From NCBI RefSeq assembly GCF_031769215.1, contig NW_026781945.1, forward strand, positions 1,240,001 to 1,304,000: 64,000 nt of DNA, written 5' to 3'. This document shows positions 22,133-47,933 of this stretch, piece by piece (the stretch's first letter is position 1; every line of letters begins with the position of its first letter). This DNA is from Ylistrum balloti. Lineage: Eukaryota. The translations under genes and the position numbers were made by a program. The notes under the pieces were generated by a model that was given only the letters and a program-made list of their open reading frames with translations, made no database searches and had not been told where the DNA came from.

Positions 22133-22515
22133 GACCTGACACTGGTATGTACACAAGCAATTGGCAATATGAAGCTCCAGACATTACCCCCGAGATTGGG
22201 GAGGGACCTGAGGTCCACATCGAGGGTCATGCTATGATACACATCGAAGGCAACAAGAAGGCTTGTGCATTTTGTCAGATGCATAACATTAAAACTAAGT
22301 CAGGCTGGGCAATAAAATCTTACTATAAGTGTGAAACTTGTGATGTACCACTATGTCGGGGTAAAAGTAAACAGTGCTACCAGAGATACCATGAACTGCG
22401 CAGGGAACATGACAACATGTCACCTCGGATGATGCAGAAAGCTATCAAAGCTTCTATGCCAAAACCTGCTAAATTTTCCTTTAAGACAGCAGATCCCCCA
22501 CTATCATTTTGGTGA
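22133..22515 (+). CDS. V5: piggyBac-type cysteine-rich domain (CRD) terminal exon
   Basis: Phase-1 acceptor tttctttatccctttcag|ga. HAMIHIEGNKKACAFC..KTKSGWAIKSYYKCETCDVPLC..CYQRYH. AATAAA at 22563. Confidence 0.9.
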
Positions 22516-23616
22516 TCTGTCCATCAGAAAATCTGGCAGTTTTTATTTTTCACTGTGAACTTAATAAATAAGTGCTATAACAGATCATCTATTGAAAATC
22601 AAATTTGGAAATTCAGATTCTGTTGGAGATTTTCCTCCTCGTGGTTTTTGGTGCGCCAGAAGATGTAGTAATTGTTGTGGACGATCAACACAGATACTTT
22701 GATGTCTAGATATTACTCGGTTCCAAAATGGCTAATCACCAGGATGTTTTTTCAAATATCATGAAATTGGGCTTGTTGATGTCATGATACAATTTTGTGT
22801 GGTCAGCAAGGTTATTTTGAAAGTAAGAAAATATTTAATTGGGACTACGACTATTGATAAGGTGATTTGTAGTATGTCAGGTTATTTCTGAAAAATATAT
22901 ATTGGTAGTTTATATATTTGATAATGATACTGATTGTCAAAGTCGTTCGTAACCGGTTTTGATTTATCAACATGGATTTTTTGTGTCTTCAAATAAAGTA
23001 ATATGAGGTGTGAGGTAAAAAGCACAACTCCGTTATATCTTTATTTTGTAGAAACAAATCAAAACAATGCAGTTGAGGAAATTTTTGCTCAAGTTCATTT
23101 GTAAATAACAGTATTTCTTAAGCACTTTAAGAGTTTGTGTTACATATCCTGTAAACATGTATAATGTCTGATCATATCAGAATTTTTACCTCGAGATGCC
23201 CAACAAAAAGATTTAGACATGCACAGTGGTTATAACACATTATGTTTATGCACATATTTTCAAATGTCTTATTTATAATCATGCATATTGTTTGTGGGAA
23301 TTTTATTGTTGTATTAAAATAAATTTTAAGTTATATTTATCTTATTTCGAGACCTATATAGTGGCATGCTATTTTTTTTTTTTTTTTTTATGAAGAAAGG
23401 CTACCAATATTAGTGTCACACCATCATTGAATGTTTGTTTTCATACCCTATATGGAAATGTTGTGAAATATTTACAAATTACAAATGTCAAAACTGCGCT
23501 GCTGACCCATATTTCTTCAGCAGATCTCGTTTTGTTTGACATATATAGCAAATGAAATTCCAGGTACAGTTGACAGGAAGTGACACTAGTAACCGAGCCT
23601 TTCTTTATAATTGCAG

Positions 23617-24116
23617 GGGGCAGTAGTGTAACCTTCCCGCAGGGTAAGCCCTCTTCAGTTACCATGGCAACTAGCCTGTCGGGTAACAATTCCATGGCTA
23701 ATATGACAACAAGCTTGCTAGGGATTGGTACCAACATGTCCATGGCGACTAATCTGCCAGAGTGGCAAGACCAGATACAAATACAAGGTGTTGACCATCG
23801 CCTCATACATATTGGAGGGAAGAACCGGGCTTGTGCTTACTGTACTATAAGTAAAAATAAAACCAGGTTAGGCTGGGCTAGGAAGTCCTACTACAAGTGT
23901 GATGCATGTGGAGTGCCCCTTTGTCGTGGGGAGACTAATTGCTACGAGCGATATCATGACTTAGTGCAGGAGCACCAACACCTTGTAGACTCCCCCAAAA
24001 ATCTGTACAAATTTCTCCTAAGGAAGTTCTCATCACAAGTAGAAGTAGACTTTGTGCAGGAGACTTTCAAAATGCAAAGCATGGACTTTGGATTGGGCAA
24101 CATAGAACCAAAATAA
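23617..24116 (+). CDS. V6: piggyBac-type CRD terminal exon
   Basis: Phase-1 acceptor tttctttataattgcag|gg. HRLIHIGGKNRACAYC..KTRLGWARKSYYKCDACGVPLC..CYERYH. Confidence 0.9.
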
Positions 24117-24674
24117 AATTTTTGAAATTGAAAAATTTCAAATGTGATTTGCTAAAATAGTTTCATCAGTTGATACAAGGAGAGGAAAGAATGGTTGCCA
24201 AGCCATATTGACTTTTCCATCAGTAACAATGGATTTTAAATTAAGAACCATTTCTGGATCCAAGTTGTTGACTGAACACTGGCTGTCTGTATAAGAACTA
24301 TTCCTGGTTCCTGGATATGTATGGCTGATTCTGATGGCTGTCAGTATATAGAAACCAGATTAATTAAAAAAAGATTAATGGATACTTTATGAAAATAATC
24401 TGATGTCCTGAGTTCAAAATCATCTATATGACACGTGTATTAATGTTTTTTTTAATGCTTCAGTTGAAAATTGTACAACTGAGAAGAAAATAACTTGATT
24501 TCCAAACACCTTGCTGTGTGGAACTAGCACCAATATAAAGTTTTTTTATTAATTTGTTAGTATCCTTGAAGATCAAAACAATGTGATTAAATATATCAAA
24601 AAGTTTTTTTTATTTTTTTATTTATTTTTTTTTTTTTTGATAATTGGGTAATCCTGGTTTCTTTGTCCTTTCAG

Positions 24675-25051
24675 GAACGCCAGTTCCTCAAGAAAACATT
24701 GCCTACATAAGCCAATCAGAAAGTACAGCACACTATCAAAGTAGCCAATCAGAAGGCTTCATACAATCTCAATCAACCAGTCATTCTGAAAGTGTTCCTT
24801 CTTGCATAGTTAAGGACTATGGAACACATGCAACATTCCAATCAGAAATTCCTGGACATAGGCTAGTAACAAGACCAGGGCGTCAACTGAAAGCGTGTGT
24901 GTACTGTCAGTTGAAGAAGGTCAAAACGAGGTCAGGATGGGTGGTGAAATCCTATTACATGTGTGAGGCATGTGGTGTACCCCTGTGCCGGGGTCAGCGG
25001 GAGTGTTACCACTATTATCACCAACTTATTTCAGGACATGGTCCGATGTAG
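24675..25051 (+). CDS. V7: piggyBac-type CRD terminal exon
   Basis: Phase-1 acceptor tttctttgtcctttcag|ga. HRLVTRPGRQLKACVYC..KTRSGWVVKSYYMCEACGVPLC..CYHYYH. Confidence 0.9.
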
Positions 25052-25231
25052 TGGTCAGTGATACAAAAGACATTTGTTTAGATAACATTAATCTTCTTTT
25101 CTCCCCTCGTGTTTGTGTTGGTCTGTGTGTATTTTACCCTTGTGATTTAGTGATAAGATTATAGGGTACAAGTATTAACTGTACCAGGTACTCATGGTCT
25201 CTGTCCTAACTTTTCTCTTTCTCCCTTTCAG

Positions 25232-25611
25232 TGCCTCATGGTGTTCTGAGTCCAAAACGATCCCTTGACTCATTTTTGGGGCCATTTGATGATCATGGCT
25301 CCTATGGGTCAAATGAGCACCTGGGCCTGCTCAAGAGTGGGGAGAACCCGACCATATTAGATCCTAAAGGTGTCATTCACACACAGATAACTTCTCAAGG
25401 ATACAAACTGAAAAAGTGTGTTTACTGTGCATCTCATCGTGTGCGGTCCAAGTCTGGCTACATTGTGTATTGTCGATTCATGTGTCAGACATGTGATGTG
25501 GCATTGTGTAAAGGAACAAGGGCCTGCTTTCAGATGTATCACAAAGAATTATTTCATGAACAAAAAAGCAATGACCAACCAACCTCTGATTCCTCACAGT
25601 ACATTCTTTAA
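25232..25611 (+). CDS. V8: piggyBac-type CRD terminal exon
   Basis: Phase-1 acceptor tctctttctccctttcag|tg. KKCVYC..RSKSGYIVYCRFMCQTCDVALC..CFQMYH. Confidence 0.9.
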
Positions 25612-25701
25612 AATGTTAGGTGCATGTAGGTGTTTTTAATGGCTAGATAAAGGATGAGTTTTATACTGTTTGGATAATTCCAAATCCTTTTATCCTTTCA
25701 G

Positions 25702-26324
25702 ACTCGGCATCAGTATCCCACAGCCAAATGCAAAGCTTTCAGAGCCTTTCAAAAAACTTTGCACCATGTCCTTCCAGACAATCACAAATTCTAGGCCAGG
25801 GGAATATTTCAGGTCACCTAGCAAAGCTTGCTTGCATGTCAGTCCCAGAGTTCCATGGTCAGGTGTACAGTAGTAAAGAGCAGGGTAAAGAAAGCCCAAA
25901 CTTTGGTGTTAATCAGCAAAGAACAGGGTCTTTGTATCTAGGAGGTCATCACCATAGACTTGCTCATCTTCAGGGTCTCAGGAAGTTATGTGTGTACTGT
26001 CAGTTTAATAAGATCAAAACCAAATCTGGGTGGTGGATCTATACCCGTTACAAGTGTGATGGTTGTGAAGTGCCTTTATGCAACACCACGTCAGAACGGG
26101 ACTGCTTCATGCTTTACCACAACTTGATGTACGGGGGTTCCAATGTTGAGGGTTCAAAGGTTGGCCAAGCTTCTCCGCTCATTGAGACTCGAACCTCGGT
26201 CCCTGATCCTGTGCTTGTACAAAGCATTACAAATAATGATGCAAAGGTAGAATTCTCACAAAGCACTTCAACTTCTACCTTTTTAGGACAAAATGTTTAC
26301 AATGCAGACAGAGTAGACAACTAG
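25702..26324 (+). CDS. V9: piggyBac-type CRD terminal exon
   Basis: Phase-1 acceptor ccttttatcctttcag|ac. HRLAHLQGLRKLCVYC..KTKSGWWIYTRYKCDGCEVPLC..CFMLYH. Confidence 0.9.
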
Positions 26325-26421
26325 ATACAAGGATTTTACACGACGTGGCGTGTTAATTACATTATAGATATTGCTGCTACAGTGATAGGAGGGTAATCAA
26401 ATGTCCTTTTATCCTTTTCAG

Positions 26422-26834
26422 AACCAGCCTCAAACCCTTACAGCCATTCAAAATCCTTATTAAATTTATCAGGCCACCTAACAACGATGGCTCGAATGTC
26501 CGTACCAAGTGTGCTGCAAGTGGCACCCCAAAGACAAATGGTCATAGCTCAAAGTCGATTTCCACAAGGTCACCCTCCTCAAGGTCATGTTTTAGAGGCG
26601 AGGACTAGTAGCAAGGGCACACTGATGGTGGACCCTAGCCACCAGGGGGATCTACAACACCGTCTGGTGCACTTAGAAGGCCAAAAGAAGCTGTGTGTTT
26701 ATTGCCAATTAAATAACATAAAAACTAAGTCAGGATGGTGGGTTTATACCTGGTACAAATGTGAAGGGTGTGAGGTACCGCTGTGTAACACGACGTCGGA
26801 ACGAGACTGTTTTATACTCTATCACTCACATTGA
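26422..26834 (+). CDS. V10: piggyBac-type CRD terminal exon (close duplicate of V9)
   Basis: Phase-1 acceptor ccttttatccttttcag|aa. HRLVHLEGQKKLCVYC..KTKSGWWVYTWYKCEGCEVPLCNTTSERDCFILYH. Confidence 0.9.
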
Positions 26835-27230
26835 TATATACCTGTTACTTCATGCGGTACGGCAGTGAATTGTGACGGAATCTGTCACGCCTATTAAACT
26901 ATACATGCTATGTACCACTGTGTAATATGACATCAGATTGTCACTGACCATCTACACATGGTACAATATAAGATTTTTTACACAGTAAGATCATTTCTGT
27001 TTATACTTAATACTGGTTAAACAACTGTTGTAATGCCTGTGTGGCATTAATGCCATCTTGTGTCCTTGGTGTGAGTTTCAACACCAGAAATGAAACATAT
27101 TTCATCCCTATACAAACTTTAGTGTAAGTTTGAACGCTAACACCATATGTCCTCACCAAAGTACCTAAAGTCCCTAACCAATATCACATATTTCTTTTGA
27201 AGTACCAAGAATTTACCTGTAATGTGATAC

Positions 27231-27339
27231 AATAAAAAGACCTTTCTGTGTTCTCTAACAAGGTTTTCATCACGCTCTGTCTTTTATATGCCACATTCTT
27301 CCTACACCTGTCATTCTGTGATTTATTTCATGAAATAAA
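27231..27339 (+). terminator. Candidate shared polyadenylation signals for V7-V10
   Basis: AATAAA at 27231 and 27334, followed by GT/T-rich sequence (ttgttttatttgttgt). I saw no AATAAA in the short gaps between V7, V8, V9 and V10. Confidence 0.5.
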
Positions 27340-28028
27340 ATTGTTTTATTTGTTGTAAAGCTTTCACTTGTGTTGTATGTTGTAATCAACAGTTGTGTAC
27401 GAGACGGACACCGTTTTAGTGAGTTCTGCAATAACTATTTATAACAGAGAATCTATCAATACTTGTCTCAGAACCTTAGATACCTAAGAGTGTTTGATAT
27501 CAATAAGAAGGCCTACTGCGGGTTTACTCTCCTGATGATGTTGTAAGGATTTGTCCTAAGATAATCTTCAGATATTTTGTTCAGAGTTTTGTCATAAGAT
27601 CATGTCCAAATAATCCTTCACAAGCTGTAGTCTAAAGATAACTTTAGATGAACTCACAGAACCTGTACCTTATCCTAAGATTATCACAAACATACTCTTA
27701 ATCTATTACTGATTTTACCTCTGATAATTCTCTAGGCCTGCTCCTACATATCTCAGATAATCCTGCATGGCCCATAAGAAATTTTTTCAGAGCTTGCAAC
27801 AAAGATTACATGTATAGCACCTTGGACCACCTCCAGGGATAACCAGAGATATCCAGATACTGGCCTAGTTTGACTATATATTGGAATACACTAAAAGTTT
27901 GATATCTAATAATGTAGGCTTTTAGATCAGGTCATTAAAGAATTAGCTAATACTGAAGGTTTAGTTTTAAGTATTGAAGGTTTCTGGAACAGGAGAGATG
28001 ATTTTGGCCATTCTGTTTTATCTTTCAG

Positions 28029-28411
28029 ACCCTGGCCCCCTTAGATCTGTGTGTGGATCCTCAGCAACCTTTGGCAGCTTAAGTCCCTTTAAGTCCAATA
28101 TTACCAAGCACCTGGAGGGGCTGGGGCATAGAATAGATAGAAATGTAGAGAATAAGCCACGACTGTGTGTGATGTGTCAGGCTGGCAAAGTGAAGACCAG
28201 GAAGGGCTGGAAGGTGTACTCTCGCTTCCACTGTTCTGCCTGTGTCGTCCCTCTGTGTATTGGGGAAAGGGACTGTTTTGGTACCTTCCATAAGTCTCTT
28301 TGTGAACCCTTCCTGAACCAAGAGAGTGCTGCTGTTCCCAACATAGGGCCTATCATCCTCTCGAGTCACATGTATCCCTCCATTGAGGATGAAAAACCAA
28401 AATATCATTAA
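28029..28411 (+). CDS. V11: piggyBac-type CRD terminal exon
   Basis: Phase-1 acceptor ctgttttatctttcag|ac. PRLCVMC..KTRKGWKVYSRFHCSACVVPLC..CFGTFH. Confidence 0.9.
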
Positions 28412-29077
28412 ATTTAAATTGAATATTTTGTGTCTGGCAAAGCTCATCACAAAATGGCTTCATTCACTTGTCGTCTGCAACTTTGACTTTGTCATGAACA
28501 ACTTTGACCCTGCCATTGCCTTCTGTCTCCTTTCACTGGAGGAAAATGTATGTGATACCACAAATTACCTTCATCAACTGTGAAGGTGTAGAAAAATAAA
28601 GTGGTTGCAAGGCAAAGTAGTTGTGTAAAAACGGTTGTTTATATCCTTGCAGAAAATGTAATAATTTTGATTCAGTACTGTGCAGACAGTTAAATCAAGA
28701 GTCCAGATATCTTTTCTCAAATCCTGAAAATATTTATTCATCTTTCTTCAAAATTGTTAGCATATGACATCTTAATGCAAAGAGTGAGAAAGAGAGAAAA
28801 AAAAAAAGAGAAAAAGAATTACGTTAAAAGATCTTCATAACTTTGTAGGCACAATTTATTTCATATCAATATAGTGAATAAATTAATTGATTACCAATAT
28901 CTGAAATTGCTGTACATACAAGATTACCTTAACTCCTATCCTTCACCAGAGGCAAAAAAAACGTATTGTATTATATGCATGACTTGGTACATAATGTATT
29001 AATAGTTTCTTGAAGACGAGAATAAAAAATAAAAAATATCAAGAAAAAAACTGAGTGCGTTTATTTTGTTGTTTCAG

Positions 29078-29403
29078 GACCGATGGATGCCCTAACAATG
29101 CGTGCTAACCAATCACTGAGCATGTCGGTCACGTCTCCCCTATCTCTAGATTTGGAACGTATAGTTGACTCGCAGGTTAACAGGCATATCCCCACTAAGA
29201 CCAGGCCCTCAAAAGTGTGTGTTGTGTGTCGCTTCAATAACGTAAAAACTAAGAGAGGGTGGCGGGTGTATACCTCAGACAAATGTGCTATGTGTAATGT
29301 TGCTTTGTGTACCGGCCCTCGTGCCTGTTTCGTAAAGTTCCATAATCTCTCGGACGATGACAGAACTCAAGTCTTAGCAAATCCACCATTTCCATACTTG
29401 TGA
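29078..29403 (+). CDS. V12: piggyBac-type CRD terminal exon
   Basis: Phase-1 acceptor ttattttgttgtttcag|ga. SKVCVVC..KTKRGWRVYTSDKCAMCNVALC..CFVKFH. Confidence 0.9.
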
Positions 29404-30000
29404 ATATTGACAACATAGCCGAAAGCAGATTATTGTCCCACACTATCTAGTTAGGAACACCTATTTGGGGTGATACAGTAAGCAGGGGACTGTCACATAT
29501 CTCTGACCTAGAGTTAGGACAGTTGATTTTTACAAGACAAAGATTACAGCAGTATAAATGGTTGGGCTTATTACTAAGCATTGACATGTTACTGGATATA
29601 TACAGAAAGGGCTGTGTGATCCAGATACCTACCAGACTGTACATAAACGGATACAGGATAGTTCGTTAAAACAACACTGCTTCAGATACAAAGTAAATGA
29701 TTCGGAGATATTTGGGTAGTTCGGGAAAAGGCAAACTTTTCAAAGATTGTATGGTATATGTACTTGCCAGCAGTTTCTATTATTAGGTTAGCCAGGATGG
29801 TTCTTGTCAACTAAAGAGTCTAGATACATAGCATTTGATACATATCAAAGCTACCTATTTCAAATATTTGATCAACAGTTTTTAAAAGTCTGGCATTTCA
29901 TTGTTGACATTGACACTAGATGGTTCAAATGAATCATATAGTCTGGTTACTGGAATATCCAGGTACAATATGATTGACAAGTGGTTCAGACAATTGCCAT

Positions 30001-30500
30001 CTGGTTCAGATGAGTAATGTGGTTCACATAACTACTATATGATTCAGATGAGTGACGTGGTTCACATAACTGGTTCAGATGAGTAATGTGGTTCACATAA
30101 CTGCTGTCTGGTTCAGATGAGTAATGTGGTTCACATAACTGGTTCAGATGAGTAATGTGGTTCACATAACTGCTGTCTGGTTCAGATGAGTAATGTGGTT
30201 CACATAACTGGTTCAGATGAGTAATATGGTTCACATAACTGCTATATGATTAAGATGAGTGACGTGGTTCACATAACTGGTTCAGATGAGTAATGTGGTT
30301 CACATAACTGCTGTCTGGTTCAGATGAGTAACATGGTTCACATAACTGGTTCAGATGAGTAATGTGGTTCACATAACTGCTATATGATTCAGATGAGTAA
30401 TGTGGTTCACATAACTGGTTCAGATGAGTAACGTGGTTCACATAACTGCTGTCTGGTTCAGATGAGTAACATGGTTCACATAACTGCTACCGGGTTCAGA
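30001..30500. repeat. Minisatellite of alternating 31- and 38-bp units (69-bp higher-order period)
   Basis: Core ttcagatgagtaatgtggttcacataa. The spurious minus-strand ORFs show a 23-aa (69-nt) period. Confidence 0.92.
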
Positions 30501-32481
30501 TCTGTGAGGTTGTTCACATTATATATAAATTCATAATTCTTGTGAAGCCTGGCGCATTTCAGATGAAGTGGGGATGAGCAACAAGTGTATATTTTATGGT
30601 TTACAAGTTTTTTTTCATCCTTGCATTTGTATCTGAATAATTTATGATATAAATGTGTAAACTAGATGATATATACGAAAGAGAATTTTTTATAACTCTC
30701 CATTATCAGTTGAAGTCAGTTCCAATCTATGAATTCTCTAACAACAACCTGTAATGTCTATATGAAAACACAATATGTATATGTTACTCAATATTTCTAA
30801 CCTTATAGGAAAATGCAGAATTTGTGTTTATGGTTATGTACTGCTAGCTGGCCTACTGATGTTGTAAAATAAAACTGTGACTAGACTTATATGGTGTTGG
30901 TGCTTTTTGTAAGGAGTGGCACATATAAATATCCTCAGGGAACCAATGTAATAGAAGGTTTATAACAAGGGATTTCAGTTATCACTAACAGGAGTCTTGT
31001 GATAAAGCAGAGCTCAAAAGGTGAAAAGCTTTGTCAGCTTAAATATTATGTACATAATAATTAATTCAGAACATTGTAAGGTATTCTGTGCATACATGTA
31101 CACTGTTATGTGTTGACATGAACAATTTAATTTCTATTTATGAAATTTTGGTTTTAGAAATTTATATTAAAATATGAGAAAACCATCACTTTAGACATTT
31201 TGATTGATGCTATAAAGCTATCAATTGCTGTTGGAGCCCCAATCTGACTGTTGTGTGACCTAGCAGCCTGGTAAAGAAGCCTGTCTGAGTCATACACAGC
31301 CCAGGCAAACCACTAGGCTTGTCATGTTTGCCATGATAAACAGCTTACATGACAAGAGGCATCCAATGGGGAACTTCAAAACAGCAGCTGTAGGATTTTC
31401 TTCTCTCATTCCTAAATAAATAAGATCTCTGCTCAATCGTGTGTTTAGTTATGTTTGATGTATGGAGTGTAAAATATAAGAATTATTTAGAAGTGGTTAT
31501 GTAACTGCTACACGTATCAGAAAAGATGTTTACATAATTATAGTGTTTCCATATATAAAAACCTGTATTGATAACTTGAAATTTGGAGACCATCCAAATG
31601 GAGTTCTCTATTTTGATACCTCAAGGACAATTATCTCCATATGATAACTTGAAAGTCTGAGGCCCTTCAGGGGGTAAACTGTCTATTCACATGTTCTCTG
31701 AAACAGGAAATTGTTTTCACCCGTTTAAAGGCATTAAAGGGATTTCATTCTGGAACACTTGATATAAAACCAGTAAAAACAGTAATAACATGAAATAAAA
31801 AGGAAACTACCAGGGACTAGATGACTTTACCTTGTAGTGATGGTATTCTATTTAATGGCTAGACTGGTGTTTACATAACCTGATAATAGTGTACTGCACT
31901 GTATCATGTATCATGTATCATGATGACTAGAAGTGTTGTCGGTAGGATCCTGTGCCAACCTCTATAACACTGTTATTTTAATATTTAACCAACCTTTCCA
32001 CTATCCCAATACTTAAAATAAATTTTCATCACAAATAGAACAGTTTTTATGTTTGTTATTGTAAACAAAATTACATAACTGAGGAGATACACTGTTGTTG
32101 TGCAATGCAGCTTCACACCACAAGCCTTCACTGTCATTAAACATTGATGATGTATTATCATACAAACTGACTGTGTCATCTTTACATAAAATTCCTTTAG
32201 AAGGTTAAATTACACAATGAGTTGTCATGGCATTCACAAATATGTAAAGGGAGCTAACTCCTTTTTTCTACAGAAATTTTATAGTTATTGCTTATAATGA
32301 TATAGGTAAGGAATAATATTGATTTGATGTTAATAGTTTCACATTCACACGGTCATCTCTTTATCACTGCATATTGTGTAACTGAGAGGGAACAGTAACA
32401 TAAAAACTGACAAGTCTATAAAGATACATACCTTCAGATGTATACCAAACATTAACACAATAACATTGTTTGTACTTTGAC

Positions 32482-32822: not shown

Positions 32823-33079
32823 AGCGAGGTGATTCCGTCCCATTTCCCACGATGCCTCCTCTTTTCCCTTCCACCATGCACATGTCACATCACAGGGCTG
32901 TTCGTAACCATGGGAACAAGTACACCACATGCTTCTTCTGTCTCAGAAATAAAGTGAAGACAAAATCAGGGTGGCGTGTGAACACTTACTATAAGTGTGA
33001 ACAGTGTAATGTGCCACTCTGTATCGGCAAGGACAGAAACTGTTTCGACCTGTTCCACAACATTTTAATGAAGCAATGA
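32823..33079 (+). CDS. V13: piggyBac-type CRD terminal exon
   Basis: Phase-1 acceptor tttctttttcctttcag|ag. HRAVRNHGNKYTTCFFC..KTKSGWRVNTYYKCEQCNVPLC..CFDLFH. Confidence 0.9.
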
Positions 33080-34093: not shown

Positions 34094-34422
34094 ACACCAA
34101 GTCTGGCCTGTTCCATCCTCCTTTCTCCCAATCTTCAAGTGTAGAACTCTTCCCGCCTCTGACAGGCGACCTCACCCAACACATCCCTGTCAAGAACGAG
34201 AACAACAAATACACCAAGTGCTTTCTGTGTCTGAGGAATAAAACTAAGACAAAGTCTGGTTGGCGTGTCAACACTTACTACAAATGTAGCCATTGTTCCA
34301 TCCCTCTGTGTAACAACCGAGAGAGGAACTGTTTTGAGACTTTCCATCGCCAGCTTCTTGCATACAAATCAGAGGCTAGTCAATACACAAACCCACAGCT
34401 ATTTAAGTACCCATTTGAATGA
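34094..34422 (+). CDS. V14: piggyBac-type CRD terminal exon (absent from the ORF track because it has no start codon)
   Basis: Phase-1 acceptor ggtttctttatcctttcag|ac. Manual translation: DTKSGLFHPPFSQSSSVELFPPLTGDLTQHIPVKNENNKYTKCFLCLRNKTKTKSGWRVNTYYKCSHCSIPLCNNRERNCFETFHRQLLAYKSEASQYTNPQLFKYPFE*. Confidence 0.9.
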
Positions 34423-34655: not shown

Positions 34656-35608
34656 AAGATCCCTGGGTAGCCTCCTCAGTATCAGGCTCTCCTTTCCCGG
34701 CCTCACCTTCTTGGAGAAGTTCGAGTCATGTGGGTACCCTGCCCACTAGACTTGCCATCCACAAACTCATTCCTATCACTGGCCCCATCAATAGAAAGCT
34801 TTGTGTTTACTGTCAGCTAAATAAAACTAAGACCAAGTCAGGCTGGTTGGTGTACAGTCGCTGCAAGTGTGAGGCGTGTGATGTGGCGCTGTGTAAGAGG
34901 GAGAGGGGATGTTTTAAACTCTACCATGATCTCATCTTCGGCGGTGTCAATGAGGCGAACGAGTCTCAGACGGGCGTCGGTTCAAATGTGAACCTGAAGC
35001 AGTTCATCGTCAAGCCTCATAGTGGTGTCACCATGTCTCAGGCTAATGTCTCCTCGTCAGTTTTAAGTAACACTGCACCATACTCCAAGTATGCCTTGTC
35101 ACACCATGTCGCCTCATTGTCACAATCAAATTTGTCGTCTACTAATCAAAATGTCTCCTCGACACATCCAAATAATTCTCATGTTCTGGTTTGTCCTACT
35201 TCTCCAAAAAGAGAATACCACCAGTTACCTTCCTCATCTGTTGACAGTACAATGTCAACTGGTCACAGCAGACCTGACTTTGAGGAACCTCTTGCCCTCA
35301 CAATGTCCGCACATGTAACTGCAAACTCGGGTCCTGTGACAGCAAGTACTGGTCATGCGATGCCAAGTTCTAGTCATATGGCACCGAGTCCTGATATGGT
35401 GACAGAAAATTCTGATAACATGGCTGCAGATTCTGGACAAGACATCATTATTTCCAGTCAGGAGACTTCCGATACAGATCATGTGTCAGAAAGCACTGCT
35501 CAGGTGACTGGCAGTTCAGATCATGTGACTGGAAATGCTTCCTATGCCTACGGAAGTGTAGTATTCCCAACTCGAAGCTTTATGCATGACAGGACAGAGG
35601 AAGGCTAG
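34656..35608 (+). CDS. V15: piggyBac-type CRD terminal exon with long S/T/H-rich tail
   Basis: Phase-1 acceptor gtttctttatcctttcag|aa. HKLIPITGPINRKLCVYC..KTKSGWLVYSRCKCEACDVALC..CFKLYH. Confidence 0.9.
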
Positions 35609-37527: not shown

Positions 37528-38132
37528 TACCTGGGATGGACCTGAAGCTTGACCCTGACTCAGTAGTGTCTGCTTACCAGCCATCAACCCTTGAGGAGGT
37601 GGACGACATGCTCGATCTCCAACAGACATTCAGTTCTGATATTGGCTTGTATGAGGGAAACACAGGTATTGTCAAAAGACGTGCCCGTGGGCCCAGGAGG
37701 GGCACGTATGGGCGTTTGATGAACCGGAAAGAGCATGTATGTCCAGAACCAGGCTGTGACTTCAGAACTACTAGACTATATAACTTCCAGAGGCACTGTC
37801 GCATCCATAATGACGATGCAAAACTAAAGTGTGACATCTGCCAGAAAAAATTTCTGGATGCATATGAATTGAAACATCATGTTGCTGGTCACTCTGGTGC
37901 CTTCAAATGCAATCTGTGTGATCGTAGTTTCGCCTCGCGTATGGGGTTCTATGAGCACACTAAGTTTCACCAAGAGTCTGACGAGAGGTTTGACTGTCAA
38001 ATGTGCGGTAAAACTTTCTGGAAAAAGTCACGATATGTCTATCATCTGAGAGCATATCACAATAAGATACTAGTTGAAGAGGAGGAGGGTAGATTTTCAT
38101 TGCAAGATGCTGACACTAATTCTTCATCTTAG
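37528..38132 (+). CDS. V16: 4 C2H2 zinc fingers preceded by a basic patch
   Basis: Phase-1 acceptor ctgttttatccttctag|ta. KRRARGPRR is followed by CPEPGC..HCRIH, CDIC..HVAGH, CNLC..HTKFH and CQMC..HLRAYH. Confidence 0.9.
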
Positions 38133-39242: not shown

Positions 39243-39586
39243 TGTTAAAACAACAAACTGTAAATATCTCAATTGTTAATTTTCTTATAAAATTCAATAC
39301 GATAAAAATAAAGTTATAAATAATGTTAAACATCAATGTTGTTGTTTTTCTCTCCTGTGTTTAAACACAGTGGTCATGTGACAGACTCTCCAACAGAAAG
39401 TTGTCATAGGATGGGCTCTCTAACAGCTAGTTACAGACACACTGCTTTAACAGATACGAACATGCCATTAGGAAGTTCACATAAAGTGAATATTTATAGC
39501 ATAGCTGAACAAGTTTGGAAAAAAGGGAAATAATTCATTATCACCTACTATTCAGGAACATTCATTAAAAATAATCATGTATTTGG

Positions 39587-40022
39587 AAAATTATTGACGT
39601 AGATAATACCAGCAGTTGTTTTGGAAGCTTAAAATTATTGACGTAGATAATACCAGCAGTTGTTTTGGAAGCTTAAAATTATTGACGTAGATAATACCAG
39701 CAGTTGTTTTGGAAGCTTAAAATTATTGACGTAGATAATACCAGCAGTTGTTTTGGAAACTTAAAATTATTGACGTAGATAATACCAGCAGTTGTTTTGG
39801 AAGCTTAAAATTATTGACGTAGATAATACCAGCAGTTGTTTTGGAAACTTAAAATTATTGACGTAGATAATACCAGCAGTTGTTTTGGAAACTTAAAATT
39901 ATTGACGTAGATAATACCAGCAGTTGTTTTGGAAGCTTAAAATTATTGACGTAGATAATACCAGCAGTTGTTTTGGAAACTTAAACTTATTGACGTAGAT
40001 AATACCAGCAGTTGTTTTGGAA
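39587..40022. repeat. 44-bp tandem minisatellite, 10 copies
   Basis: Unit aaattattgacgtagataataccagcagttgttttggaa(g/a)ctta with period 44 (39591 ... 39987). Confidence 0.96.
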
Positions 40023-40837
40023 GGCAGCAATCCTTGTTTCTGATTGCCAGACTTCTGGATCGCTCTATTTTCCTGTAGATGCCAGACAGGGATTTGGACA
40101 ACTGTATTCACCTTACAAACCCAGATTCTGTCTGTTTCAGGGTAACATCACAATTTATTTAGACCTATGAAAGGAGTTTTGACCATTCAGTAAGCAGATT
40201 AAACTTTATATTGTATATGACAATAGTAGTTGTCCTCCATTCTATACCAGGTTTTGATCAGACTGGTTCCTCTATAAAGCAGGAACTACTTATCACCTGT
40301 GTATTTGCTCTGTTAATCATTTTACTGGCATTGTGTCTGACATTCATTGTATACTTTCTGTGCTATTCGGGTTAAAATCACAACTCATTTTACTGACCTT
40401 GTGAATCTGATCTAAACTTAACACAGAATTTCCTTAATGCCTGCCGAAGAGGGACAGACACCCGGACAGTTTTCAAAACAGATATTAATGGTAGTTTGAA
40501 GATGAGCAGTTAGACTGATTCTTGGTGCATACTATGGCGGGGAGAGGGAATATTGTATTTATTGTATAGATTTAAAATGATGTCTACCATACCTGGATCT
40601 AGGCTCCTAGTGATGTGTTAAATCTGACATGTTATTTACCTGTTATCGACGGAGAACAACAAACTTTGACCTTGAACAAATTTGCATATTAATATATCCT
40701 TTATAATCGTAGCTTTGAGTTTTGAATTCCTATGTGTATGTTGTAAGCGTGACCTTCACATCTTCCAATTATTATTTTTAGATTCTTTCGTGTGTAAGGT
40801 TTCTCGCATGGTAATAGATACATTTTTATTCTTTCAG

Positions 40838-41400
40838 ATCCAGAGCCTAGTGATAGCAGTAACATGCCAAGATTCATAAGACAAGTTACCTCTGGCAAAC
40901 GTCCACTGATTTCTGAAACTTTTGGCCTCCCTCCTGAACTATTACAGTCATTCATAATTCCAAAGCAAAATTCACAAGGACGATTACAAAGTCAAAGTTC
41001 TGACATTTCACAAACAAGGTTTCAAGGTCAAAGTTCAAATATGACAACAGTCCCAACAGTTATGTCTGACTCCATGCTTCGACACCATGAAAATATAGTT
41101 TTACCTGACCCCAACTTGAATATAAGTCAAGGCCTTTCCTCTGCATATAGAGGTCAACATGATTATGGACAGCACAAGCTTGTGTATATAGCAGACAAGA
41201 AGTACAAGCCATGTGTGGTGTGTGTACTTAACAAGGTGAAAAGCCCTAAAGGGTGGTATATTTACTCTTATTACAAATGTGAGGTGTGTGATGTACCTCT
41301 ATGTCGTAGTAAGCGGGACTGTTTCCATCAGTACCATCAGTATATGTCTACTATGGATACAAGTGAACTGCAGTTGAATTTTCCTTCCCATACAGGCTAA
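40838..41400 (+). CDS. V17: piggyBac-type CRD terminal exon
   Basis: Phase-1 acceptor catttttattctttcag|at. HKLVYIADKKYKPCVVC..KSPKGWYIYSYYKCEVCDVPLC..CFHQYH. Confidence 0.9.
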
Positions 41401-43507
41401 TGGCCATTCCGTAGAGTCTGCAATGAAAGTGTGAATGTTTTGTCCTCTTTTAGTGTGAAGTTTTATACACACATTCCACCTTGAAACTGATTTCATTAAA
41501 GTTCTATAGGAGTTTTCTCCCCAAAAAAGTCTAAATCCTGAATTCTTCATGTAAGTATAGTGCAAGATTCTTCCTAAGACAGGTGAAAGTCTGTTGTCAC
41601 TTAGGTTTGTAAAAGTCTGATGTCATTGAAGTGTTTCTAGAGTGTAAAACCTAGTTTCATGAAGTATGGTGCAGGTTTTCTCCTCATACTGGAGTAAAGG
41701 TTACTTTTCAATACAGTTTAGGGGCTCATGACATATGAAAGTTCCATAAAGTTGTGTGTAGAGACTGATGTCTTTGAGGTATTTGATTAACCTCATTGAT
41801 GAAGCATTTCTGGTATCATTGCCTTGATTGGTATTTTGTATATAAAGTTACCTAGCCATAAATATTTGTAGGATATTCTTGTCAAAACAACCCTCAATTT
41901 CTGTAAATTAATAAATATTTGTAGAATATTCTTATTAAAACAACCCTCAATTTCTTTGCCTATTATAATCAATAACTGGTACATCATGTTAGAAGCAAGA
42001 TAAAAAGTATTGCTTATCCTTTCATCAATGTTTTACGCGGAAAGCAAAGTGAAAGTTTTCATGGAATTACGGTACAGCAGAAAAAGATAGATGATTCCTT
42101 ACCATCTTATATACTTCATTTTTTTAAGTGCTAGTAAGCTTCACATTGGTCATTTGTCTTATAAAGATGGCAGTGTAGTCATGGGAGTATCTCCTACTGG
42201 CTGTGAGAATTTAAGAACTTCTATTCTAAAAATAAAAGATGTAGGTTTGAGCCGTCCTTACATTGATCTGTAAATCTTGGAGTAAAGTCACCTCCAATTA
42301 CTACGCTGCATTGTGTTCCAATGTGGCATAGTTTTACTATAGGTTCTAAATTTTATATTGATCTTGAATTGATATTTAAAGTTACAAACAAACAGAAATG
42401 GCATTAAAAATAATTATTCTAAAGTGTGGTATTTATTCTGTATACCATACTGGTTTTTATAGCTCATCTTCCCAAAGAACAAGTGAATTTATGCCATGAT
42501 GCTGTGTTCATTGTCAATCCATCATTAATAGACAACCACTTCTCAAAAACCAAGAGGCCCTAGCTCATAATATTGGGCCTGTACCATGCTAAGATGAAAG
42601 GGTACTCATTTTGCTAAATTGAATGACCTTGACCCATTTTCAAGACCACAAGGATCAATTGTGCTGAAATCCTTAAACATCATCTCAGTAAGAAAGAGAG
42701 ATCATGATACCTAGGTATCTTAGCCTGCAACATGTGTATTGTTTAGAAGTGGTTTGATGTTTGAAGTGAACATGAAAGGTAACAGGATAAAATCTCGGTA
42801 TCATGCCATCTTGTTTTGAGACTGTAATGTAGGTTTGGGGTTCAGGCCCTTAAGGCTGTTTGTTTTATTGCAGACAGATATGTAGGGAAATGTCATTTAG
42901 TCTAAAGGAAGCAATGAATAATATGCATTAAATCCTGCAGTAGAGTGCATTTGAGTTCTCTCTTTTTCAGTGTGATATTTAGATAAACCAAACATCGCCG
43001 TTACAACATATTGTGACATTTGTAGGTTTGTAAATATTTGTAAAAATGTTGAAATTCAGTATCTGAATATTGAAATGTTATGATTTCTATTAAAAATAAA
43101 AACGGTTGCAGTGAAATCAATAATCGTCTGTTGTCTTTATTAATATCAACACACCTATATAAAGTTTGAAGGAAAATATGAAACCTGCTGTATTTGGACC
43201 CCACGCTTATCAGGACTATCATCTTCCATTGTTTACAAGTAGAGCTCTATAACCACTCAATCCTCTTTGTCCTTACACTGCAGGTTTGAAGAGAACTGCT
43301 TCTGAATGGCATCCATGTGTGCATTGAATTACTACTGTCAATTTTACAAGAAGTGTCTTTAGAAGTTGAGAAGTAAAGATTGAATTATTTTAAAAACCAC
43401 CCTCAGTCTTAGAGAGATTTCAAGAAGATCTAGTGAATTGTGGTATGTTACATATCCTTTGGTACAGACTTTTGAGTTGTAACAAAAGCATTCTTTTTTG
43501 CTTTCAG

Positions 43508-44118
43508 ACCCACAAACATCTGCTGGCAGTAAAGCTCAATGGTTATCTAATGCGATGAGGCAGGATGCAGTTCCTTTTAAGGGTACGGCCCACCAAGGGT
43601 CGTCATTAGGCTCTACCAAGGCCCTGCCTGGTTTGGGATCCTTTTTGAAAGGTCCTGGATATAGTAAACATGGTCTGTCTCAAAGTCAGCTAGTCTCAGC
43701 TATGATTCATGGTTCCCTGTCGGGACACCAGACAGCTTTATTGACAGGAAGTGTATCTGAACCTAGTGCTCCCAATCTACAGCCTGGACAACAGGGAGCT
43801 TGGTTACAGCAGCAAGGTGAAGGTCAAGGTCATGGTGAATCTCACAACACTGGTCCTTATAGTGATCATAAGCTGGTGTACACCATTGACAAGAAATATA
43901 AACCTTGTGTCTTTTGTCAGATCAACAAGAAAAAGACAAAATCAGGATGGTATGCCTACTCGTACTATAAATGTGATGTGTGTGACATACCATTGTGTAA
44001 GGGCAGTCGTGACTGTTTCAACCAGTATCACAAATTCCTTGTTATCAACAAAGATTATGGTGGCGTCAATATTCCTAAATCGAGGCTCGACTCGTACCAA
44101 AATTCTCTAAATCAATGA
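43508..44118 (+). CDS. V18: piggyBac-type CRD terminal exon (sister of V17)
   Basis: Phase-1 acceptor ttcttttttgctttcag|ac. HKLVYTIDKKYKPCVFC..KTKSGWYAYSYYKCDVCDIPLC..CFNQYH. Confidence 0.9.
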
Positions 44119-44609
44119 ACACCCTTATTTTGAGATGTTACAATACCTACTAGAGTTGCTGGCTTTTCCCACAAAAAGTATTCAAATGAGTACTGAATTA
44201 GCTGTTCTGAATTAGACCTTTTCTTTGTTTCTGGAAAGAAATTCCTTTTGTGTGCAACTGATGAAGAAGAACTTGTTTGATAAAGACAAAATGTACAATA
44301 TACAATACCTGGTGGAGTGATGCTAAAAAGAAATAGTGTTTTTTTACCAATTAGTTCCATCCTTTTTTTTACATGAAGAGCATGTGTCTTGCCTAATAAA
44401 GTAACTGGCTTTCCTACAGAAGAATTATTTTGATTTCTGAACATTTTCAAAGAAAATTGTTGTAAAACATGTATACATGTACAAATATTCCATATCAAAA
44501 GCCTTACTTGGATTCACTGATTAATTGTTGCCTTATATTGATATTTCTAGCCTTACATGGGTAGAATATTGGTTGATGTGTAGGAACAGAAACATTGTCA
44601 ATTATTTTA

Positions 44610-44915
44610 TGGTGATCTGTGTGACCAGGACTGAACAAAAGCATGCTGCAATCTGTGGTGGTCTGTATGACCAGGACTGAACAAAAGCATGCTGCAATCT
44701 GTGGTGGTCCGTATGACCAGGACTGAACAAGAGTATGCTGCGGTCTATGTTGATCCATTTGACCAGGACTGAACAAGAGTATGGTGCGGTCAATGGTGAT
44801 TTGTATGACCAGGGCTGAACAAAAGTATGCTGCGGACTGTGGTGATCTGTATGACCAGAGCTGAACAAGAGTATGCTGCAGTCTGTGGTGGTCCGCATAA
44901 CCAGGGCTGAACAAA
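44610..44915. repeat. 46-bp tandem repeat, about 6-7 copies
   Basis: Unit tgaccaggactgaacaaaagcatgctgcaatctgtggtggtctgta at 44622, 44668 and onward. Confidence 0.92.
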
Positions 44916-45389
44916 AGAGTATGGCTGAATCTGTTATGATATTTGAAACTACTATAAACATGTAGAAGATTAAAACTTATTGATGAATGTTCTGTAATGT
45001 CTTCCTTGATGACATGTGAAGAGGTTGGATATTTTCCTGTAATACACCAACAATAACCAGGGTTTCCTCCTCCCTTCTTTTCTTGTAAACCACACAATGC
45101 TCTTGATGTTCAAGACAGTTTTTAACAAGTTGTGAATATTTAGGCAATCCAAAGAATTAAAAATTCCAGGTTGTAAAATGATTTTTTTTGTTTCTTCTTT
45201 TTTGGTCTCCAACAAAAAAACTAAATTGAAGTCAAAACTGTCTTCTAATTTGCCTATAGAACACCAGAACACCTGCCAGACTTAACGCACACAGATCAGA
45301 CCTGCCAATGTTTTTGTCAATGGAGATGCACCCTTATCACATCCATGAGATTTTTTTGCCAGGCTGAATTCGTAGATACACACTAATCA

Positions 45390-45940
45390 CATCTACTGAG
45401 GGTTTTGCCAGACTTTCGATGTAATTGCACACTGACCACACCTGCTAATGTTTTTGCCAGACCTTTGATGTAGATGTATACTGACCACACCTGACAATGT
45501 TTTTGCCAGACTTTCGATGTAGTTGCACACTGACCACACCTGCCAATGTTTTTGCCAGACTTTCGATGTAGTTGCACACTGACCACACCTGCTAATGTTT
45601 TTGCCAGACTTACGATGTGGTTCACACTGACCACACCTGCTAATGTTTTTGCCAGACTTTCGATGTAGTTGCACACTGACCACACCTGCTAATGTTTTTG
45701 CCAGACTTTCAATGTAGATATATGCTGACCACACCTGCCAATGTTTTTGCCAGACTTTCGATGTAGTTGCACACTGACCACACCTGCTAATGTTTTTGCC
45801 AGACTTTCGATGTAGATATATGCTGACCACACCTTCCAATGTTTTTGCCACTTTCAATGTAGATATATGCTGACCACACCTGCCAATGTTTTTGCCAGAC
45901 TTTTGATGTAGTTGTACACTTACCATACCTGCAAAGGTGT
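45390..45940. repeat. 49-bp tandem repeat, about 11 copies
   Basis: Unit ccacacctgc(c/t)aatgtttttgccagactttcgatgtagttgcacactga with period 49 (45436, 45485, 45534 ...). Confidence 0.95.
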
Positions 45941-46006
45941 TCACTTTATCACTGATGGAGTAATGATGATGTTACTAAACTCTTACAATACTCACCTCTT
46001 TCATAG

Positions 46007-46153
46007 GGCCCCTGTACCCAGCCAAAGGGTGGGGCCGCAGAGGGCGAAGAGAGGACAACTTTACTGACATTACCATTGTACTACTGGACCAGCCCAATCT
46101 GACAGAGGTGCCCAAAATCACCACTCTGAGAGAGCTGGAAGCCAGAGGCTTGG
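46007..46153 (+). CDS. V19a: first exon of a two-exon variable cassette (not in the ORF track)
   Basis: Phase-1 acceptor ctcacctctttcatag|gg. Translation GPLYPAKGWGRRGRREDNFTDITIVLLDQPNLTEVPKITTLRELEARGL. Phase-1 donor G|gtaatt. Length 147 nt is divisible by 3. Confidence 0.72.
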
Positions 46154-46199
46154 GTAATTGATTTCATGTGTACTGAATATCTGTCTATCATTTGATGTT

Positions 46200-46449
46200 A
46201 AGTATCTTAGTTTCCATCTGCGAACAATCTGTGAACATTGATGTAAAATACTTGGTGTTGTTAAGGTTAGTTTCCATCTGCGAGCAATCTGTGAACATTA
46301 ATGTGAAATAACTGGCGTTGTTAAGGTTAGATTCCATCTGCGAGCAATCTGTGAACATTAATGTGAAATAACTGGCCTTGTTAAGGTTAGTTTCCATCTG
46401 CGAGCAATCTGTGAACATTAATGTGAAATAACTGGCATTGTTAAGGTAG
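46200..46449. repeat. 60-bp tandem repeat, about 4 copies, inside the V19 intron
   Basis: ttaaggttagtttccatctgcgagcaatctgtgaacattaatgtgaaataactggc at 46261, 46321 and 46381. Confidence 0.95.
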
Positions 46450-46562
46450 ACTTCTAGGTTACCGGTACCGTTACACCTCTAATTCAAGATTTCTCACCTT
46501 GTCTGTGGATATCAGGTTACAGATTTTTGTTTTACCCGTGACCTGAATGGTTTGTCTTATAG

Positions 46563-46789
46563 GTGAAAGGTCGTTAAAGGTTATGAGGAACATGACATTG
46601 GAAGGGATAAAATCCTTGATTGTACAGACATTTCCAATGCTTCGGGCTGGGGAGTTCACCCTGTGGAAGTCCGAACAAAACAGGAAGCTAAAAGGTCCGC
46701 TGGTATGCCCTGATGTGCAATCACTCAAATGTATAATAAAGAAAGGCAAAGTCTTCATCTTACCAAACAGACGTATTGTTCTGCTTTGA
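46563..46789 (+). CDS. V19b: terminal exon of the two-exon cassette, putative ubiquitin-like/beta-grasp domain
   Basis: Phase-1 acceptor tggtttgtcttatag|gt gives GERSLKVMRNMTLEGIKSLIVQTFPMLRAGEFTLWKSEQNRKLKGPLVCPDVQSLKCIIKKGKVFILPNRRIVLL*. The sequence is globular with an alternating beta/alpha pattern. The fold call is inference. Confidence 0.7.
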
Positions 46790-47163
46790 GATCGTGTGGA
46801 AATGAGTTGACCAGCATATCTTCAGCACTTTTACCAATCAGATTGGCAGTATCAATCACAGCACAGTATCACAGCCGCTACACTTATCTATATACGAACT
46901 GAGACAGCCCTATTCTTGGCCCTTGTTATTCTGTCATGTCTTTTCATTATGTTGGAATTCCCTTTTCATTTTAACATTTTTATCTTCCTAATATTTTGAA
47001 GATTCTGTTTTTGGAACAGGTGCTTTGTCATGGTCAGTGAACCCCTTCACTTCTAAAGACGTTATGATATAGATCATTTGTTAATAATGTAAAGATATCT
47101 GATAAAATTGTCAAAATTTTGAAATACCCGAGTAGTGATACAAGTATTTCTTTATGATTTCAG

Positions 47164-47933
47164 AGCCTATACCAAAACATAGAAGTGTAACACAGCAGAA
47201 TGGCGAGAAACAGAATCTCAAACTTCCTCAGATGGCTCCTGTAGTAGCTTCCTCCAAAGCCCCCACCACTGTAACTTCCTCATCTAGGCAACAGGTGTAT
47301 CCTGAGTTTGAAGGGGCAGACCCTGCCCTATTAGCTCTTGGCATTACTGATAGCTGTATTACCCCAGGAGAGGTGTATATAGACATAGGGGGAGAGAACC
47401 AGGATGATGTTGTCATCACTGGTAACACTCCTGGTGTCTCAAGTGTTCAGCAACATAAACAACACAATTGGGGTGCATCCCCACGAACGGGTAAAGCTCG
47501 GGGCAGGTCTCCACGGCCCCTACTGGGTTCTACCCAGGGGCATGCCACTTCCTGGGATCAGGTTGCTATGTCAAGAGATTCACAGGTTGTCCCAGTAGAA
47601 CTGCACAGAGCTCATTCATATCAGGACGCTTTCCCAGATGAGCCAGGCACTGGAGAACGAAGTCCTCGCAGTGTTGGTGCCATGTTAAATCACAGGGCAA
47701 TACACACACCCATGATGAAGAATAAGCCTTGCGCCTATTGTTTGATGAAACAGGTGAGAACTAAATCAGGCTGGTATGTATACACCACCTACAAATGTGA
47801 GGTGTGTGATGTGCCACTGTGTACTGGACAGAGAAACTGCTTTGCACTCTACCACATGGACAACAAACTACCTGGTCAAGTTATCAACACCAGAGCAGAC
47901 AGCAACAATGTATTGTCAACTTTACAATCGTAG
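47164..47933 (+). CDS. V20: piggyBac-type CRD terminal exon with long N-terminal linker
   Basis: Phase-1 acceptor gtatttctttatgatttcag|ag. HRAIHTPMMKNKPCAYC..RTKSGWYVYTTYKCEVCDVPLC..CFALYH. Confidence 0.9.

Follow-up and report, generated by a model that had tools for sequence, protein, structure and literature searches.

A scallop BTB gene with fourteen alternative last exons encoding piggyBat/PGBD4-type cysteine-rich domains, putative DNA-recognition modules of probable transposase origin

We analysed a 64,000-nucleotide stretch of the genome of the scallop Ylistrum balloti (NCBI RefSeq assembly GCF_031769215.1, contig NW_026781945.1, positions 1,240,001 to 1,304,000 of the forward strand; hereafter the window, with coordinates counted from its first letter). 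The window contains most of LOC132565629 (contig JAUZWB010000497.1), a BTB transcription-factor gene in which the donor at 13474 joins a constant BTB part to any one of a set of over 20 alternative last exons that all carry a stop codon of their own. The largest class of these, 14 exons, encodes a cysteine-rich domain (CRD) of the type found at the C-terminus of certain piggyBac-family transposases; the same gene also has alternative exons with BEN, C2H2 and DUF3504 domains. The constant exons are as follows (a slash marks a splice junction).

11303-11437, + strand: constant exon 1, start codon and N-terminal part of the BTB domain; maps exactly to amino acids 1-45 of RefSeq isoform X1 (P0122); donor GTAAGA.
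11715-12988, + strand: constant exon 2, remaining BTB domain and a long Ser/Pro-rich linker; P0122 amino acids 46-470; Pfam BTB PF00651, E 9.7e-7.
13194-13474, + strand: last constant exon, terminal donor AAAG/GTAGGT, one codon base left over (phase 1).

P0122 is an isoform of Y. balloti itself, and in the RefSeq proteins the constant part ends in ...WYMGTFK, after which the variable exon begins. Inspection of the N-terminus of the constant part (MSSMNYQKVYMNQIHSSSLL...) showed no TTK-type FxLRWN motif. The 14 CRD exons, with their scores against the Pfam family PF13842, are listed here.

22133-22515, + strand: CRD exon 1 (V5), 127 codons with its own stop; 29 bits; acceptor ctttatccctttcag/; orthologues P0131 and P0136.
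23617-24116, + strand: CRD exon 2 (V6); 26 bits; junction the same as in Pecten maximus isoform X12 (P0004).
24675-25051, + strand: CRD exon 3 (V7); 32.8 bits; orthologues P0133 and P0149.
25232-25611, + strand: CRD exon 4 (V8), GY in place of GW; 35 bits; orthologues P0125 and P0134.
25702-26324, + strand: CRD exon 5 (V9), tandem sister of exon 6 (98/90 support); 32.8 bits.
26422-26834, + strand: CRD exon 6 (V10); 34.6 bits; junction the same as in P. maximus P0002.
28029-28411, + strand: CRD exon 7 (V11), of a subfamily common to oyster, mussel and ark clam; 32.7 bits.
29078-29403, + strand: CRD exon 8 (V12), upstream His two residues further on; 23.4 bits, under the cut-off of 24; orthologues P0124 and P0139.
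32823-33079, + strand: CRD exon 9 (V13); 31.9 bits; orthologues P0123 and P0140.
34094-34422, + strand: CRD exon 10 (V14), tandem sister of exon 9; 32.8 bits; orthologues P0005, P0130 and P0006.
34656-35608, + strand: CRD exon 11 (V15), long Ser-rich tail after the domain; 31.8 bits; orthologue P0143.
40838-41400, + strand: CRD exon 12 (V17); 33.4 bits; orthologues P0009 and P0308.
43508-44118, + strand: CRD exon 13 (V18); 35.1 bits; core visibly near Crassostrea virginica P0044.
47164-47933, + strand: CRD exon 14 (V20); 39 bits; acceptor ttctttatgatttcag/.

A six-frame regular-expression scan of the whole window, on both strands, for C-x2-C…C-x2-C-x(1-3)-[LIVAM]C…C[FYW]xx[FYW]H returned exactly 14 matches, all on the + strand between 22264 and 47855, with the spacing C-x2-C-x18-C-x2-C-x3-C-x5-7-C-x4-H and first cysteines at 22264, 23832, 24896, 25417, 25989, 26694, 28166, 29218, 32930, 34219, 34802, 41212, 43906 and 47730. 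The motif was found neither on the - strand nor elsewhere in the window, nor in a further 24 kb of the same gene covered by a longer stretch (L001), in which every residue of the 14 domains is the same and the positions differ by a fixed 1302. An earlier note on this DNA had placed fourteen piggyBac-type CRDs at 22133-47933, and both the number and the limits were borne out: the scan and PF13842 each recovered all 14, position 22133 is the acceptor of CRD exon 1 and 47933 the stop codon of exon 14. The shared motif that it gave stood in substance, except that the element K[TS][KR]SG[WY] fails in four copies (KTRLGW, KTRKGW, KTKRGW, KSPKGW). When the 14 domains were aligned, C17, C20, G30, C39, C42, L46, C47, C54 and H59 were invariant. 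An upstream histidine (H5) was present in 13 of them, and the exon at 29078 has Asn in that column and His two residues further on.

Each CRD exon begins at a strong phase-1 acceptor just past an upstream stop codon, matching the phase of the constant donor, and ends with its own stop codon; the acceptors have a common tract of the form ttctttatcctttcag/, ending tttcag/, and the C2H2 exons likewise have phase-1 acceptors. The splice pattern predicted from these sites was found in RefSeq isoforms of P. maximus, Argopecten irradians and Mizuhopecten yessoensis, which continue from …WYMGTFK with exactly the residues expected (some of the Argopecten isoforms are labelled 'longitudinals lacking protein-like' by NCBI), so that the description of the CRDs as interchangeable exons in the earlier note holds. 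In addition, Logan contig SRR5451711 (3147 bp) has an uninterrupted 648-aa open reading frame (ORF) with BTB and zf-Tnp_2 domains and, being without introns, represents a spliced transcript. The array is a BTB locus of the lola/mod(mdg4) type, in which constant BTB exons are followed by alternative terminal exons in one splice phase. Since all of the alternative exons lie downstream on the same strand, cis splicing suffices and trans-splicing need not be invoked.

An inverted repeat of 24 nt lies at CRD exon 1 (21984-22007 and 22112-22135; 83% complementary, arms 104 nt apart); one arm is purine-rich and the other covers the polypyrimidine tract and the acceptor of that exon. It could be a splice-site-masking hairpin, or chance. 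On the + strand GGATAAAGAAA, which is complementary to a tract common to several CRD acceptors, occurs in exact form only once, as the arm at 21984-22007; a Dscam-like docking/selector pairing was considered from this complement, and the C2H2 exon V16 has a similar tract.

PF13842 (zf-Tnp_2, 'DDE_Tnp_1-like zinc finger') was the best and only significant family for all 14 domains (E 1e-9 to 9e-5), 13 of which scored above its curated gathering cut-off of 24 bits (26-39 bits). When a profile of the 14 domains was compared with the PDB, the best sequence match was the C-terminus of the piggyBat transposase (9c0f, E 1.5e-4). An AlphaFold2 model of the domain (pLDDT 85.5) retrieved 9c0f first and the PiggyMac CRD (6zop) third in Foldseek, and comparison of this predicted model with the solved structure 9c0f in VIA gave Z 6.5 with a root-mean-square deviation of 2.2 A over 54 residues and 30% identity. 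The next VIA matches, RAF and PKC C1 domains and a HIT finger, had Z ≤2.9, and PiggyMac had Z 2.4; C1 and HIT neighbours were also reported for the piggyBat CRD by its authors (PMC11707139). Among Swiss-Prot models, the top four were the C-termini of human PGBD4, PGBD2, ERCC6-PGBD3 and PGBD3. The closest structural neighbours are therefore piggyBac-family CRDs and not an unrelated fold.

The piggyBac superfamily has two unrelated CRD folds, the PHD-like type of Trichoplusia ni piggyBac and the type of PiggyMac, piggyBat and PGBD2-4, which has an upstream His ligand and C1-like topology (PMC8086355, PMC11707139). The scallop ligand pattern H5, C17, C20, C39, C42, C47, C54, H59 fits that described for the latter class in PMC8086355 and, judged by the fold model, the scallop domains are of the piggyBat/PGBD4/PiggyMac class and not of the PHD-like T. 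ni type. The kinship with piggyBac CRDs drawn by the earlier note stands, with the qualification that the binding of element ends it cited is known for the T. ni CRD and transfers only via the piggyBat structure (PMC11707139, PMC8086355). The histidine of the piggyBat IPLH motif is replaced by Cys in the scallop domains (VPLC), which by alignment would make both zinc sites Cys3His. From the eight conserved ligands we infer that the domain, which has ~60 residues, probably binds two zinc ions.

Other scallop genera yielded 1:1 orthologous isoforms of 11 exons out of the 14. Between genera, identity is 93% in the domain (96% when a frameshifted P. maximus copy is excluded) and 69% in the remainder of the exon. 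A 20.8-kb Mizuhopecten stretch (L003) has nine collinear orthologues of the first nine CRD exons, from which the ratio of nonsynonymous to synonymous divergence (dN/dS, omega) between Y. balloti and M. yessoensis was estimated over 492 core and 679 remaining codons. As NG86 alone overstated dS in this Cys/Lys/Tyr-rich domain, the estimate was redone with LWL85, YN00 and maximum likelihood (ML). By the four methods the domain cores had dN 0.016-0.020, dS 0.54-0.87 and omega 0.019-0.036 (bootstrap 0.021-0.057), and the linkers (679 codons) omega 0.40-0.48. The domain is under very strong purifying selection; neutral evolution, which the earlier note had named as an outcome that would count against it, predicts a ratio near 1, far from the ~0.03 found for the domain across species. 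Between paralogues, synonymous sites are saturated even in the closest pair (dN 0.10; dN 0.1-0.46 overall), so the duplications are old. Fifteen alignment columns vary among paralogues and are at least 90% conserved within orthologues, and these include the residues right after the first CxxC and the residue after G-W. On these alignments, this is the pattern that would be expected of modules with different, fixed specificities.

Synonymous divergence was higher in the finger cores than in the linkers (0.38 versus 0.275 at 4-fold sites; ML dS 0.54 versus 0.38), which may reflect codon composition or constraint on the linker RNA. The P. maximus orthologue of CRD exon 3 (24675-25051), isoform X26 (P0129), reads ...KKVKTRPWPP and then stops; this has the look of a frameshift within the finger, due either to an assembly error or to a lineage-specific loss, and the exon is intact in Ylistrum, Argopecten and Mizuhopecten.

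The region 21.5-48.5 kb contains, over its two strands, 118 open segments (stop to stop) with a length of 55 aa or more, and all of these were searched for transposase remnants at E ≤ 0.01. None of them matched a transposase family, the DDD core family PF13843 included; 14 segments matched PF13842, one matched C2H2 families, and a few minisatellite translations gave spurious matches. An inverted-repeat scan yielded only eight short inverted pairs of 16-24 nt, none of which brackets any CRD exon as terminal inverted repeats would. At this sensitivity, the absence of a DDD core and of terminal inverted repeats reported in the earlier note is confirmed. The BTB-CRD isoforms, too, have the BTB part and no DDD core upstream of the CRD.

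These results bear on the possibility that the cysteine-rich ORFs are decaying piggyBac relics in the introns of a BTB gene, mis-joined to it by annotation pipelines. Such relics would account for a Pfam family that is otherwise a transposase family and for the many database relatives that are orphan single-exon ORFs. They would not be expected to remain intact in all 14 cases, on one strand and in one splice phase, with an omega of ~0.03 and an order collinear with Mizuhopecten, nor to lack, at the sensitivity of the scans, both a transposase core and terminal inverted repeats, and a spliced BTB-CRD transcript contig exists. The idea of relics is already contradicted by intactness, omega, collinearity and the transcript contig, and we consider it extremely improbable.

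A profile search of 1.84 billion representative proteins returned 635 matches at E ≤ 1e-3, 288 of them at E ≤ 1e-10. Nearly all of the best 150 of the 635 were orphan single-exon ORFs, and the named matches in cluster look-ups were all from bivalves. A region-restricted search with P0009 gave 2 candidates, an alignment search gave 15 short ORFs, and an Atlas feature search gave PF13842-type leads only. Annotated proteins that combine BTB with PF13842 exist in oysters, mussels and pearl oysters. In the ark clam Tegillarca granosa, a single strand carries nine CRD exons of this kind within 22 kb, all of them with a phase-1 acceptor of the tttcag type. When 37 domains were placed in a tree, exon 7 grouped with Magallana gigas P0051 (97/89) and with mussel and ark-clam copies (84/87), and the pairs 5/6, 9/10 and 12/13 were local tandem sisters. 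The CRD arrays are old and common to pteriomorph bivalves, and are not a local amplification.

The direction of transfer can also be read the other way: the finger could be an old host zinc-finger family, acquired by one piggyBac lineage, so that the bivalve exons descend from a host copy that was never in a transposase. The occurrence of two unrelated CRD folds on piggyBac transposases (PMC11707139, PMC8086355) implies that one fold at least is a secondary acquisition, no transposase core was seen in any of the closest representatives that were scanned (among the best 150 of 635), and the locus holds no transposase remnant among its open segments of at least 55 aa. Against a host origin, the known bearers of this class of CRD are piggyBac-type transposases, and proteins derived from them, of ciliates, insects, fish and mammals (PMC8086355), whereas the named transposase-free copies found are from pteriomorph bivalves only. 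With the transposase-borne class so widespread and the named free copies so restricted, parsimony favours transfer from transposon to host, and we regard a host origin as unlikely.

Taken as a whole, the locus is quite probably a BTB gene whose 14 alternative piggyBat/PGBD4-type CRD last exons are DNA-recognition modules derived from a captured transposase CRD. Each CRD would be a module of distinct specificity. Major-groove reading would fall, as in the piggyBat CRD, to the basic loop of 18 residues that separates the two CxxC pairs, and the BTB dimer would present two identical CRDs to dyad or palindromic sites. The transposase CRD would have been captured before the pteriomorph bivalve radiation and then multiplied by tandem exon duplication; that one captured exon was amplified into the family is plausible. 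In the piggyBat-DNA complex, the loop after the first CRD strand occupies the major groove and is responsible for most base contacts (R543, E545), and the dimer's two CRDs bind an imperfect palindrome (PMC11707139). In a hidden Markov model alignment, R543 and E545 (numbered as in PMC11707139; PDB chain numbering is this plus 6) map to a scallop stretch that is six residues longer and has a conserved K-T-K-x-G-W. Net charge is +3 to +6 in the 18-residue loop and +2 to +11 in the whole core, so that all 14 domains are basic. This charge, the piggyBat loop and the alternation with C2H2 and BEN exons in the same gene together suggest that the CRD is a putative DNA binder.

Several observations weigh against this explanation. 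The likeness to transposase CRDs is distant, at 23-39 Pfam bits and ~30% identity to piggyBat. Transposase core was absent from all 10 of the longer proteins scanned among the best 150 of 635 profile matches, which thus yielded no donor element. Isoform support in Y. balloti consists of automatic RefSeq models together with orthologues. Exons 3-6, and likewise exons 10-11, follow one another at distances of only 91-234 nt, and neither AATAAA nor ATTAAA occurs from a stop codon to the next acceptor, so that transcripts ending in exons 3-5 or 10 would either read through the next finger exon(s) as 3' untranslated region or use non-canonical poly(A) signals. Finally, the PiggyMac CRD, which has the same fold, showed no DNA binding and bound the histone H3 tail weakly (PMC8086355).

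The last of these raises the possibility of a different function for real, constrained exons, namely that the domain is a chromatin or protein reader of histone tails or partners, as are the PiggyMac and Tpb2 CRDs, in which case the isoforms would differ in the chromatin state or partner to which the BTB scaffold is recruited. PiggyMac belongs to the same Cys/His class and binds the H3 N-terminus without binding DNA, its structure 6zop was among the Foldseek matches, and the authors of PMC8086355 themselves caution that fold is no predictor of ligand. The scallop model, however, resembles the piggyBat CRD in its DNA-bound form (Z 6.5) far more than it does PiggyMac (Z 2.4), each of the 14 domains has a strongly basic charge, the CRD exons alternate with exons of the C2H2 and BEN classes, which are DNA-binding, and some of the paralogue-specific positions fall within the loop that reads the groove in piggyBat (PMC11707139). 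We give a reader function a minor but real chance.

Considered as DNA-recognition modules, the CRD exons invite comparison with several known systems. Drosophila lola and mod(mdg4) likewise have an N-terminal BTB domain in constant exons and a long array of alternative C-terminal exons, each with a small nucleic-acid-binding domain and a stop of its own, and the variable FLYWCH domain of mod(mdg4) is also of transposon-related origin. In the scallop gene, by contrast, the variable domain is a piggyBat/PGBD4-type CRD mixed with C2H2, BEN and DUF3504 exons, the lineage is Bivalvia, all exons lie downstream on the same strand, and the BTB domain lacks the arthropod TTK-type N-terminal motif (FxLRWN, hexamer-forming), a motif reported to be missing in molluscs (PMC11426971). 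With the piggyBat CRD (9c0f) and the C-termini of human PGBD2, PGBD3 and PGBD4, the scallop domain has in common the Pfam family, the fold, the upstream His, the two CxxC and the terminal C-x4-H; its modelled likeness to the piggyBat CRD extends to a cross-braced arrangement of two zinc ions, C1-like topology and a long loop after the first strand, which reads the groove in piggyBat. It differs from these proteins in having no DDD core, a Cys for the IPLH His and a loop six residues longer, and in being a free-standing alternative exon. The T. ni piggyBac CRD is also a C-terminal cysteine-rich two-zinc module; it binds specific repeats at the element ends and is PHD-like (PMC5861402, PMC7351741), but its ligand order, CxxC-CxxC-CxxH-CxxC, and fold are different, and the T. 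ni and piggyBat CRDs are structurally unrelated (PMC11707139).

Host-transposase fusions such as CSB-PGBD3, SETMAR and KRAB-transposase proteins resemble the scallop gene in that a transposase-derived DNA-binding part is spliced to a host effector domain. These are single fusions that keep most or all of the transposase, whereas in the scallop only the ~60-residue finger is kept, with 14 alternatives in one gene and several paralogous genes. Similarly, the piggyBac domestications PGBDs, PiggyMac and CSB-PGBD3 keep the transposase body and the scallop exons do not. Full-text literature searches found no description of BTB + piggyBac-finger genes, and a large screen for transposon-host fusions, which includes the InterPro entry of the finger among its transposon domains, shows no BTB combination in portions of its text and supplement. 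RefSeq already lists these genes, as automatic 'uncharacterized protein' isoforms; it is the reading that is new and not the sequence.

Transposase-derived transcription factors are usually one-offs with a recognisable transposase; here the finger alone was multiplied behind one BTB scaffold and has been strongly constrained since before the divergence of scallop, oyster, mussel and ark clam. The locus would thereby show the lola/mod(mdg4) design a second time and independently, in a lineage other than the arthropods, and provide a probable DNA-binding class that was not found described in the searchable literature on molluscan regulators. In public data the finger class forms no fewer than 288 sequence clusters; there are several BTB genes to a genome, and the gene described here has 14 alternatives. 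We put at about even the chance that the freed piggyBat/PGBD4-type finger is a major sequence-specific DNA-binding class of bivalve transcription factors, with BTB dimers pairing fingers on dyad sites as an independently evolved molluscan counterpart of insect lola/mod(mdg4). A bolder form of this reading, in which certain isoforms would retain recognition of the ends of piggyBac-like elements and form a repressor system directed at transposons, seems quite unlikely. In these arrays the fold of human PGBD2, PGBD3 and PGBD4 exists in dozens of natural versions that have diverged and are evidently functional; of the three human fingers, only that of PGBD3 has so far been shown to bind DNA (PMC11707139). 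If the proposal is true, the arrays would serve as a naturally occurring set of variants from which the recognition code of the human PGBD2-4 fingers, as yet unexplained, could be derived, and the gene would be a bivalve way of making many probable DNA-reading proteins from one locus.

Other alternative exons of LOC132565629 within the window are as follows.

17855-18462, + strand: BEN-domain exon; Pfam BEN, E 3.9e-5; the acceptor is one candidate among several.
19158-21512, + strand: three C2H2 exons upstream of the CRD array (~19158-19645, 20293-20723, ~21103-21512); Pfam zf-C2H2, with acceptors; orthologous tails P0003 and P0008.
37528-38132, + strand: C2H2 exon V16, inside the CRD array; Pfam zf-C2H2 and zf-H2C2_2; phase-1 acceptor.

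A 326-aa open frame at 61306-62286 (+ strand) matches DUF3504, a Crypton-related domain (Pfam E 2.3e-10), and is the counterpart of the C-terminal end of Argopecten isoform X2 (P0135). The tail of isoform X1 (P0122) comes from another exon of DUF3504 type, outside the window.

Head-to-head with this gene lies a paralogous BTB gene (4669-6991, - strand) with an identical terminal donor sequence and phase and its own BEN-domain exon (2504-2962, - strand; Pfam E 5.6e-8). Its product in L001 also has C2H2 fingers, so it has a variable array of its own. Outside the window on the same 3-Mb contig is a second BTB gene with PF13842 isoforms, LOC132565634 (P0021, P0215), which points to a multigene family of the same design. 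Its constant exon is only 53% identical to that of LOC132565629, and the gene has orthologues in P. maximus (LOC117336857) and Mizuhopecten (a 'ZBTB32-like' gene). Intronic minisatellite arrays at 29986-30441, 45383-45944, 48183-48737, 58943-59227 and 60352-61007 translate as long repetitive ORFs that give spurious Pfam matches, for example to AcrIIA4 and Zn_ribbon_TOP3B.

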